Assembly: GCA_964247055.1 (NCBI GenBank)
Contig: OZ176052.1
Location: 9,982,001 to 10,046,000 of the forward strand
Direction of reading: 5' to 3'
DNA length: 64,000 nt
Origin: Paragordius varius
Lineage: Eukaryota; Animalia; Nematomorpha
Shown: piece by piece, positions 14,401-17,114 of the stretch
Layout: each line of letters begins with the position of its first letter
How positions within the stretch are numbered: the first letter of the stretch is position 1
Notes under the pieces: model-generated
The model's database searches: none
Seen by the model: only the letters and a program-made list of their open reading frames with translations
What the model was told of the DNA's origin: nothing
Made by a program: the position numbers and the translations under genes

Positions 14401-17114
14401 TTTCGTAGACAGATGGAGCCAAACTGTTAGCTAGTATTTCATACAAATGTGGATCTTTTGATAATTTTTCCAAATTTGCTATTCGTTCTTCCGACCATGC
14501 TTTAGTACTAATATTTTAGTTATAAGTTGTAATAATGAGTTGATAAATAATAAATTGAGAATATAATTACGTATCATCGATCGTATTCAATAGCATATCA
14601 TCTTCATGGCACACAGATACATTTTGGTGTCCATTCATTTTTTGTTTCTCCATATTAAGGCTTGAATTCAAGTCATCCCTCAAAAGAGAATCATTGAGAT
14701 TAGCTATAGAAGAAGTGACCGAAGTGTTCTAATTCAAAGACGGTAAAATTATTATAAAATTATAAAACGGTGGCTATTAGCAAAGTATAAAATAAGCTAA
14801 ATTTTGGGTCATTCGTATAAAATACTGATTGATACCCCTTATAAAAAATAAAGAAAAAAATAATTTTTTAATCCCAAAAACTTTAATATATGGTAAAATA
14901 TTTAACTAATTCTTAGCCAGGTCTATAGTAAAAGGAATAGATTAAAGGTATATATTCCGATTTCTTTCGACAAAAAGCATTATATGAATACTAAATACTT
15001 ATGGATAGTTAAAAATTAACCTTATGTAACGTGGTATCCAAATTATTATTATTATTAGCCCCTTGTATGTTAGGTAATCGTGAAACTTTAATCAAATGTA
15101 AGGCATCTAAATGCGTGCTATACACAGCACGAAGTGTCCTTTTCCGATAACTTATGCGGTTGGGATGAGCCCGATAAATACCGGTTATAGCTACCCGATC
15201 GCCGGCATCACAGCTATCCACGAGGTCGGCATAACACCAAATAGTGAGGGATTGGGGTGTATGTCCAGATCCAAAATCATCTAAAAGCACAAAAAAACAA
15301 GAGAGGGTAAAATTAGTGGTCCTATAAATACGAGATGTATTTTGTTCGCCTTGGTAAAAGAAACAAAAAAAAACAACATAGTAAATGGCTAATATTATGG
15401 ATGATTTGCATTTTAATTAAATTTTTATGCTATTCTGATGAGTGGTTAATAACTCTGGGGAAAAATTTTATTCGACAAAATATATAAAATTTAATAAAAA
15501 TATAATATAATAATTAATAAATCATCCACAAAATGGTATCATATCAATGGGAAAACGAATTTCAAAATAGATTTGTATATTACTATTTATCATATTGTCT
15601 AAATGAAAAAAATATTTTTAAGAGTAAAAAATTAATTAAATTCTATAAAGTATAATAAATTAGAAAAAAGGGACGAAAAAATAAATATTTTACATCTAAA
15701 TTTTATATCTTATAATTGATTCCCCCCAAATAGGTATGTTAAACAAGTATTAACCTGGTGGTTCCTGCAATTTAATAAATTGTTTATCCGAAAATTTGCA
15801 TAGGTTATGAATCAATTCAAACGAATGATTAGTGCGACATTTTTCACATAGTGTAGGTTCAGTTATCTTACCTCTATCAATTTCAACATCAACGGGAAAA
15901 TCACATATTGAGCATTTAAAATGAGCCATATACATTTCTGGAATGATGGAAGAAACACGGATAACTAAACCTTTTACGGTTATAAGTTTGTCGATATCTA
16001 ATTATGAGAAAATATGTCGCATATTAATTGTTTTACTAGACAAATGGGTTCTGGTACCTAAATTTTTCCAAAAATATTTGGTTCCAGTTCTATATTTAAG
16101 TGAAGTTTGATTTAAGGCTCGATTTTAATACAAGTACGGTTAGCATAATTTTAAACAAAATTTTAATGTATGCTACTTTTCATTAAAATATTCATGAATG
16201 TTATATTTTCATACAATGCAAAATTGAATCAAGAAACTGTTAAAAAAATAGATTTGGTCCTAAAATTATAAAACTTTTTTAAATAGTTTTTGGTTTTAGA
16301 ACGGTTACACAAAAACGCTTCAAGTTTCAATCTTTCACATATGCATAGTAAATATTTTACCTTCTGGATTCAAATTTCGCATACTGATATCACTTTGGGC
16401 ATTGTAAAATCGAACTTGGATTTGATGCTTTAATATTATATCAATGTATTTGTCAAAAAATATTTCATTAGTTGCAATGTCACAAGCAGATATAATTTCG
16501 GTTGGGTAGTTGATTAGTTGCTTATAAAATAGGGAATCAAAATCCTTTATATGCTGACAATTTATATCTAAAAAAGGATCCTCCAATATACTAATCTGAA
16601 CTATTATTATAATAAAAAACCTCATCAATTTTTTGAAGATAATATGAAGTGTTAATGTTATCTTGATTTAATGTATTATCCAAATTATTTTCATAAGGGT
16701 TATAAGTAAGTAAAAATTTCTTGAATTTTTGTTGAACTTCTGTTATACTAATATCAGTTCCCCAAATTACCATTTTTCCAATGGTATCTGGTGCGCTGAT
16801 ATCTGAAGAAGGCGACATAACACTTGCATTCTAATGAACGATTTATTTTTATAAAATTTTGGTTATGCTATTTGTTTGAAATGATATTAAAAAATATGCA
16901 AAGTATTACATTATCCTCATATTGTAAAATTCGTCTTCGCAATGCGCTTCCTAAATCGGGTCTTTGTCTGTAGGGTGTTCCTGGGCTAAAAATAAATAAA
17001 ATAATAAAACGTTCGGTCGCCTGAAATAAGCGATCCAGGAGTTCCGTAAGGCATCGGGGAACCTTCATCTGTATTCATTCTACGGGAATTCGGAGTTGAT
17101 GGTATTGAGGACAT
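11435..17114 (-). CDS. MCM4: DNA replication licensing factor MCM4 (17 exons, 16 GT-AG introns)
   Basis: Spliced translation starts MSSIPSTP...SPMPYGTP...[13 protein letters not shown] (MCM4 N-terminus). It continues through VIWGTD, MRNLNPEDID, a C4 zinc finger (CSIC...CEKC), Walker [12 protein letters not shown], Walker [10 protein letters not shown], arginine finger LLSRFDLIF and [18 protein letters not shown]. The last exon is [34 protein letters not shown]. All 16 introns have GT..AG ends and keep the frame. Confidence 0.96.
13860..13972 (-). mobile_element. Putative tRNA-derived SINE (5' truncated) in MCM4 intron 9
   Basis: Minus strand reads tagtagatagggcgtcggactcttacactgcgtgccagagttcgaagcccg: a tRNA-like anticodon arm (CTT) and a B-box-like GAGTTCGAAGCCC. 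The following body (catcactgtcagccctgagaaggcgagtgtta) recurs near 42780. Confidence 0.4.
16596..16620 (-). other. 25-nt spliceosomal intron (MCM4 intron 3)
   Basis: GTTTTTTATTATAATAATAGTTCAG. Removal joins YLQKIDE to [13 protein letters not shown], both MCM4-homologous but in different frames unspliced. Confidence 0.85.
16986..17010 (-). other. 25-nt spliceosomal intron (MCM4 intron 1)
   Basis: GTTTTATTATTTTATTTATTTTTAG. Removal joins the conserved MSSxxSTP/YGTP frame to [13 protein letters not shown]. Confidence 0.8.

Follow-up and report, generated by a model that had tools for sequence, protein, structure and literature searches.

We analysed a 64,000-nucleotide (nt) stretch of the genome of the horsehair worm Paragordius varius (Nematomorpha; contig OZ176052.1, positions 9,982,001 to 10,046,000), referred to below as the window. 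Its minus strand carries a complete gene for MCM4 (17114 to about 11444), the 5' part of which is interrupted by two segments of only 25 nt, each beginning with GT and ending with AG (17010-16986 and 16620-16596, minus strand). Both segments had been singled out in a preliminary description of this DNA, and their lengths, ends and positions proved to be as given there. The sequence evidence makes it very likely that both are real U2-type GT-AG spliceosomal introns. Hereafter we refer to them, and to similar cases in other genes, as micro-introns.

MCM4 and the two 25-nt segments at its 5' end

The window is AT-rich, its G+C content (GC) being 24-35%. Open segments in three frames of the minus strand contain all MCM hallmarks, among them Walker A (GDPGTSKS), Walker B (CCIDEFDKM) and SRFD. 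A tblastn search with a full-length vertebrate MCM4 (P0015, 863 residues) produced 15 ordered pieces, which together span residues 70-862 of the query. The exons were also searched against PDB, one at a time rather than as a joined spliced model. The top matches for exons 2-4 were all MCM4, with no other MCM paralogue on top, and exon 4 matched solved MCM4 chains with E = 3e-26. By these similarities the gene is MCM4. All of its exons are open, without a single stop codon, and the MCM motifs are intact. About 36 residues rich in Asn and Asp (12862-12990, minus strand) form a lineage-specific insertion behind the conserved LYYKQE, in the linker before the lid domain.

Exon 4 and the exon coding for Walker A have one full match each in the 110.6-Mb assembly, in which neither a second MCM4 nor a retrocopy was found. 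Their next-best matches (26% and 58% identity, respectively) lie together at C3:9.42 Mb and, judged by this similarity, represent an MCM paralogue. This MCM-family gene (G000:C3:9424657-9426702, plus strand) is located on the same chromosome, about 570 kb upstream of MCM4. Since MCM4 is essential in eukaryotes and present here in a single copy, it must be expressed, and whatever interrupts its coding sequence must be removed. The arrangement of its exons and introns is as follows:

17011..17114, minus strand: MCM4 exon 1; 34 complete codons and 2 nt, starting at the first in-frame ATG that follows a stop (17114-17112)
16986..17010, minus strand: predicted micro-intron 1; 25 nt, GT..AG, phase 2, 8% GC, 104 nt downstream of the ATG
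16910..16985, minus strand: MCM4 exon 2; 76 nt, with PDB and P0015 matches
16831..16909, minus strand: intron 2, an ordinary short intron; 79 nt, phase 0, donor GTAATA, the sole GT..AG solution between the anchors
16621..16830, minus strand: MCM4 exon 3; 210 nt, 70 codons
16596..16620, minus strand: predicted micro-intron 2, the third intron of MCM4; 25 nt, GT..AG, phase 0, 16% GC, 494 nt downstream of the ATG
16361..16595, minus strand: MCM4 exon 4; 235 nt, its downstream border (phase 1) also being common to other organisms
11444..16360, minus strand: MCM4 exons 5 onward; introns of 74-523 nt, tblastn chain to P0015 residue 862

According to the preliminary description, removal of the two segments repairs the reading frame, and this is borne out by both an exhaustive search for splice pairs and the consequences of retention. 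In the search, every GT..AG pair between the homology anchors was considered and the resulting peptide was scored against P0015. The two 25-nt segments came out best, scoring 35 versus 19 for a 43-nt alternative and 37 versus 20 for a 40-nt one. If retained, the first segment ends in an in-frame TAG, while the second runs into an in-frame TAG just past its end. The two also differ in composition from the flanking exons, the GC of which is 29-48%. The chance of finding GT and AG at the borders demanded by homology, calculated at about 28% GC, is approximately 1 in 400 per junction. The other 14 introns of MCM4 had been described as 63-474 nt long. This range is roughly right, except that one gap is here modelled as a single intron of 523 nt. 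Ten lengths were resolved (79, 363, 474, 523, 74, 298, 116, 313, 227 and 89 nt), the list omitting the last three junctions of the gene.

The border between exons 3 and 4 (16596-16620) can be compared directly with homologues of known structure. The last residue of exon 3 aligns to residue 199 of Xenopus mcm4 and 202 of Drosophila MCM4; the first residue of exon 4 corresponds to Xenopus residue 200 and the second one to Drosophila residue 204 (E = 3e-26 to 1e-21). The homologue coordinates therefore abut across the segment (Xenopus 199/200, Drosophila 202/203), with no residue missing or extra. The same codon border recurs in other organisms. Among 150 representative proteins retrieved with exon 4 (best identity 57%, no close relative), 34 are spliced-type homologues without a break at this border. 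Another 31 are exon-sized genomic fragments in which homology starts exactly at the first residue of exon 4, and the unrelated stretch upstream of it ends in Q, that is, in a CAG acceptor read in frame. In contig L003, which carries one such fragment, the exon 3/4 border reads ...TTACTACAG followed by ATC, and the next one reads GAG G followed by GTAAGA. Both borders are as in the P. varius gene, and the L003 intron upstream of the exon-4 border is longer than 159 nt. P0003 (L002) and P0023 (L031) are uninterrupted across the MCM4 N-terminal region, and an invertebrate assembly (L030) is without the intron at the 16596-16620 site (between E and I) and keeps the next one. A word search with exon 4 yielded no candidate, from either a close relative or a transcript, within the permitted length range. 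Since the homologues abut and an ordinary phase-0 intron occupies the same codon border elsewhere, the segment corresponds to an old intron that is common to many organisms and has shrunk here. Going by this comparison of positions, 16596-16620 is an extremely shortened ancient phase-0 intron, and we consider it almost certain that an intron is really present here.

The argument for 16986-17010 starts from exon 1, which reads MSS..STP and then an SPxxYGTP-type motif. Counterparts of this motif are found in the full-length homologues P0015 (SPLTYGTPSS) and P0003 (SPLNYGTPSS), upstream of the same RxRPD motif. Exon 1 matches seven of the ten P0015 residues, and its spacing to RQRPDLGS is right. 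Moreover, tblastn sum statistics tie exon 1 (P0015 residues 70-101) to exons 2-4. Exon 2 matches residues 109-123 of solved MCM4 chains (E = 0.07) and is 76% identical to P0015 residues 109-125. The two exons lie in different frames and are joined only by removing the 25-nt GT..AG segment. With its GC of 48% (24% upstream), exon 1 is typical of coding sequence in this region.

It might be argued that this first segment alone has been misread. Translation would then start at 17068, where an ATG lies in frame with exon 2, or another 5' exon or splice pair would be used, and the MSS...YGTP frame would be either a coincidence or an upstream open reading frame (ORF). The ATG, to which the preliminary description had already drawn attention, does exist, and translation from it meets no stop across the 25 nt and on into exon 2. 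When searched by itself, exon 1 had no match in PDB at E <= 10, so the case for this intron rests on a short motif, frame logic and composition. No intron was found at the same position in another organism, the comparable locus being L030 only, in which the N-terminal intron is displaced upstream by about 22 residues. Comparison of intron positions with other MCM4 genes, suggested as a check in the preliminary description, is thus positive for 16596-16620, a position common to other organisms, and gives no match for 16986-17010. However, the N-terminus read from 17068 shows no likeness to MCM4 and would cross the stretch of 8% GC as FIILFIF, whereas the conserved N-terminus, with its ATG right after a stop, is found only in the 17114 frame. 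We therefore regard the alternative start as unlikely and a real intron at 16986-17010 as highly probable.

Introns of the same class in nearby genes

Similar segments were identified in genes for kinesin-2 and for acidic leucine-rich nuclear phosphoprotein 32 (ANP32), the former within the window and the latter on the same chromosome:

40698..40718, minus strand: kinesin-2 intron 1; 21 nt, GT..AG, after codon 29, 89 nt from the ATG at 40807; read from the sequence
40458..40482, minus strand: kinesin-2 intron 2; 25 nt, GT..AG, phase 1; located 325 nt from the ATG and immediately behind the P-loop
L020:6020-6041 (G000:C3:10212020-10212041), minus strand: ANP32 intron; 22 nt, GT..AG

The exon downstream of kinesin-2 intron 1 continues the motor domain and matches the Pfam Kinesin family. 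The exons around the 25-nt kinesin-2 intron align to the Pfam Kinesin profile at 32-93 and 99-162, and the positions in between are accounted for by the split codon plus five residues. The flanks of the ANP32 intron abut in three PDB chains (4xos_A at 71/72, 2je0_A at 68/69 and 2ell_A at 75/76). This intron and MCM4 micro-intron 1 end in the same 12 bases, ATTTATTTTTAG. Verified micro-introns thus amount to five in three genes (25, 25, 21, 25 and 22 nt). In this small sample of genes they are 5'-placed and clustered, being introns 1 and 3 of MCM4 and introns 1 and 2 of kinesin-2.

The ANP32 intron came from a homology-free scan of 264 kb (the window and the next 200 kb, L004-L023) for GT(15-70)AG segments linking one open frame to another. 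Seven dinucleotide pairs served as controls, and the scan was run first in its plain form and then with composition filters. Two other nearby genes are worth mentioning. In a protein kinase gene, a 24-nt GT..AG candidate (L005:3015-3038, plus strand; G000:C3:10059015-10059038) lies right before position 1 of the Pkinase profile, its upstream flank being without homology. The C-lobe of the same kinase is at L005:6517-6882, with a further candidate of 32 nt after it. Exon 1 of a mitochondrial carrier gene (L019:8763-9365, minus strand) runs for 201 codons uninterrupted from the start region, which means that 5' micro-introns are not present in every gene here.

Several other features of the window and the genome were noted. 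A satellite at window positions 49389-64000 continues for at least 7.5 kb past the end of the window, to about L004:7490. Within this satellite, one identical 26-nt GT..AG pseudo-candidate occurs in 11 copies spaced by about 1.0-4.8 kb. A single-exon ORF of 705 residues (22598-24715, minus strand) contains nine leucine-rich repeats (LRR_8, E = 9e-52); apart from this protein, a Pfam search with the other long ORFs in the first 48 kb of the window revealed no recognisable family. In the mitochondrial contig L024 (G000:C44:5980-10320) there are zero-loop hairpins whose arms measure 131 nt (95% complementary) and 97 nt (99%). Just upstream of cox1, a palindromic unit of about 72 nt is repeated in tandem (L024:770-1472). 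Such hairpins are a published peculiarity of nematomorph mitochondrial genomes (PMC6649704, PMC10380579). The six TGA codons in cox1 are consistent with TGA being a sense codon.

Splice signals, alternative explanations and a possible mode of removal

The donor sites of the five micro-introns are GTTTTATT, GTTTTTTA, GTAATCAA, GTTTTCCG and GTAAATTA, with the hexamers GTTTTA, GTTTTT, GTAATC, GTTTTC and GTAAAT. A distinct donor motif was considered and rejected: GTTTT starts three of the five, but the ordinary donors of MCM4 are just as degenerate. In all five, an A is located 5-8 nt from the 3' end, and the bases behind it are mainly T, up to a terminal (T/C/A)AG; such an arrangement is expected by chance in DNA so rich in AT. 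They do not fit the U12 type, since neither the 5' RTATCCTT nor the branch consensus TCCTTAAC is present, and there is no TATCCTT or TCCTTAAC-like box in any of them. The genome codes for U1 small nuclear RNA (snRNA; 124 bits) with the canonical 5' end ACUUACCUG and for U2 snRNA (178 bits) with the canonical GUAGUA box. There are 17 U1 matches, many of them degenerate, and 46 U2 matches, about 29 of which fall within 270 kb of C3. The arrays at G000:C6:565000-634000 and G000:C3:257000-528000 look like clusters of snRNA genes and pseudogenes.

Besides the missing PDB match of exon 1 and the unmatched position of the first intron, a number of observations weigh against reading the two MCM4 segments as members of a class of excised introns. 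The case for excision is drawn from the assembled DNA sequence alone. The ordinary MCM4 donors (GTAATA, GTAAAA, GTTAAT, GTTTGA and GTATCT) are equally weak GTW sites, so no sequence signal separates the micro class. Finally, the 264-kb scan revealed no significant excess of GT..AG over the control dinucleotides. The scan is underpowered in AT-rich, repeat-rich DNA, even though it was the source of the ANP32 intron.

An assembly error could in principle mimic both segments. Each is T-rich and has T runs of 5-6 bases, and dropping one T links the flanking frames, in which case a one-base homopolymer indel would have occurred in each segment and the 25 nt would really be coding. This would require two independent errors, each in a segment that happens to have GT and AG at the borders demanded by homology. 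It would also place eight hydrophobic residues (approximately VFIIIIVQ) where all spliced homologues are continuous, at the very site where other organisms have an intron. In addition, three more introns of this kind (21, 22 and 25 nt) are found nearby, two of them in kinesin-2 and one in ANP32, and the 44 contigs of the 110.6-Mb assembly suggest that accurate long reads were used. Taking these points together, we consider an assembly error to be very improbable. Non-spliceosomal removal, such as ciliate-like programmed DNA elimination, or retention of the segments in a pseudogene is an extremely remote explanation: it has no positive support, the segments end in GT..AG and not in TA..TA, one of them occupies an ancient spliceosomal intron position, and the gene is the sole MCM4 of the genome, essential and with open exons and intact motifs.

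If, as we believe, the segments are spliceosomal introns, the ordinary major spliceosome would presumably remove them by intron definition. The 5' site would be a minimal GTW, and the branch adenosine would lie about 5-8 nt upstream of the T-rich (T/C/A)AG end. The distance from the 5' site to the branch would then be only about 15 nt, and U1 and U2 could hardly fit together on the intron. Because of this short distance, we propose sequential rather than simultaneous occupancy by U1 and U2. Recognition may thus proceed by sequential binding or with cap-proximal, co-transcriptional help, the latter of which would explain why the micro-introns are located at the 5' end. The two MCM4 segments very likely belong to a class of introns of 21-27 nt that in this genome lie no more than a few hundred bases into a gene, beside ordinary introns of at least 74 nt.

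Relation to known short introns and implications

According to Hadjez et al. (2026, PMC13644364), animals had been believed to lack introns shorter than about 30 bp. In the survey of 51 animal genomes reported in that study, such introns were restricted to myxobolid myxozoans, with a median of 22-27 bp, and Dicyema japonicum, combined with reduced GTa...AG signals, canonical U2 and U2AF. This survey bears out the preliminary description, in which 25 nt was called much shorter than the usual minimum for metazoan introns. Conserved intron positions were used there for validation, and we applied the same logic here. The study also predicts further lineages with ultra-short introns (PMC13644364); Nematomorpha are not mentioned in its text, and the word "intron" is absent from two nematomorph genome papers.

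The P. varius introns resemble those of myxobolids and Dicyema in being shorter than 30 nt and in their GT-AG ends with a 5' site close to GTa or GTW. An A a few bases before AG, the likely branch site, is seen in both, although in the AT-rich DNA of P. varius it carries little weight. They also share the canonical U1/U2 machinery and, at 16596-16620, a conserved position between conserved exons. The two systems differ in extent. In myxobolids and Dicyema, introns are short genome-wide and the genomes are described as compact, whereas in P. varius only two of at least 12 MCM4 introns are ultra-short, the rest being 74-523 nt long, and the assembly of 110.6 Mb contains large satellites. For comparison, the nematomorph genomes considered in a 2024 preprint are 200-300 Mb in size (10.1101/2024.06.11.598342). 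The GC of Gordionus (26.9%) is similar to that of the window.

In their arrangement, the closest parallel by analogy is the microintrons of flatworms (Opisthorchis felineus, Clonorchis, Schistosoma, Echinococcus and Macrostomum), in which intron lengths peak at 37 and 90 bp (PMC6530080). The authors of that study suggest a preference for intron definition, and point out that the default minimum intron lengths of annotation software leave microintrons under-represented in draft annotations (PMC6530080). As in flatworms, two length classes coexist in one gene, and the short class is 5'-biased, clustered and without a motif of its own. Unlike the flatworm peak of 37 bp, however, the five verified cases here measure 21-25 nt, and the animal is not a flatworm.

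Outside animals, tiny introns of the same size range are known from ciliates, with about 25 nt in Paramecium and 15-16 nt in Stentor (PMC5014332, PMC9505925). They are removed by a spliceosome with all snRNAs present. In contrast to the introns described here, those of ciliates are uniformly tiny, with neither a coexisting long class nor a 5' bias. Ultra-short human introns (43-65 nt) are spliced by the major spliceosome and have a truncated polypyrimidine tract (PMC4463651, bioRxiv 10.1101/784868). Although they are about twice as long as the introns in P. varius, the exchange of U2AF for SPF45 described for them offers a possible model for how the 3' site might be recognised here.

The comparison suggests that P. 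varius probably represents another animal lineage, besides myxobolids and Dicyema, with introns shorter than 30 nt, arranged like flatworm microintrons. We also lean, by a small measure, towards the broader view that Nematomorpha evolved such introns independently of myxozoans and dicyemids, only in promoter-proximal positions, with introns of kilobase size persisting elsewhere in a large genome rich in repeats. If this is true, the minimum intron length would not be a fixed property of the animal spliceosome but would vary with the place of the intron along the transcript, cap-proximal co-transcriptional intron definition being one way to bring this about. MCM4 provides a clean case in an essential, single-copy gene: its 25-nt introns lie at the 5' end, those further along measure 74-523 nt, and U1 and U2 are ordinary. 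It poses a testable question, namely what enables a normal spliceosome to excise an intron of 25 nt in the vicinity of the cap and nowhere else.

There are also practical consequences. Aligners and gene predictors with a default minimum of 20-40 nt will take such sites for frameshifts. Annotations and completeness scores for such genomes, and claims of gene loss derived from them, would probably have to be reconsidered. If the broader view holds, the low gene-completeness scores and "gene losses" reported for horsehair worms might in part be artefacts of annotation software that does not model such introns.

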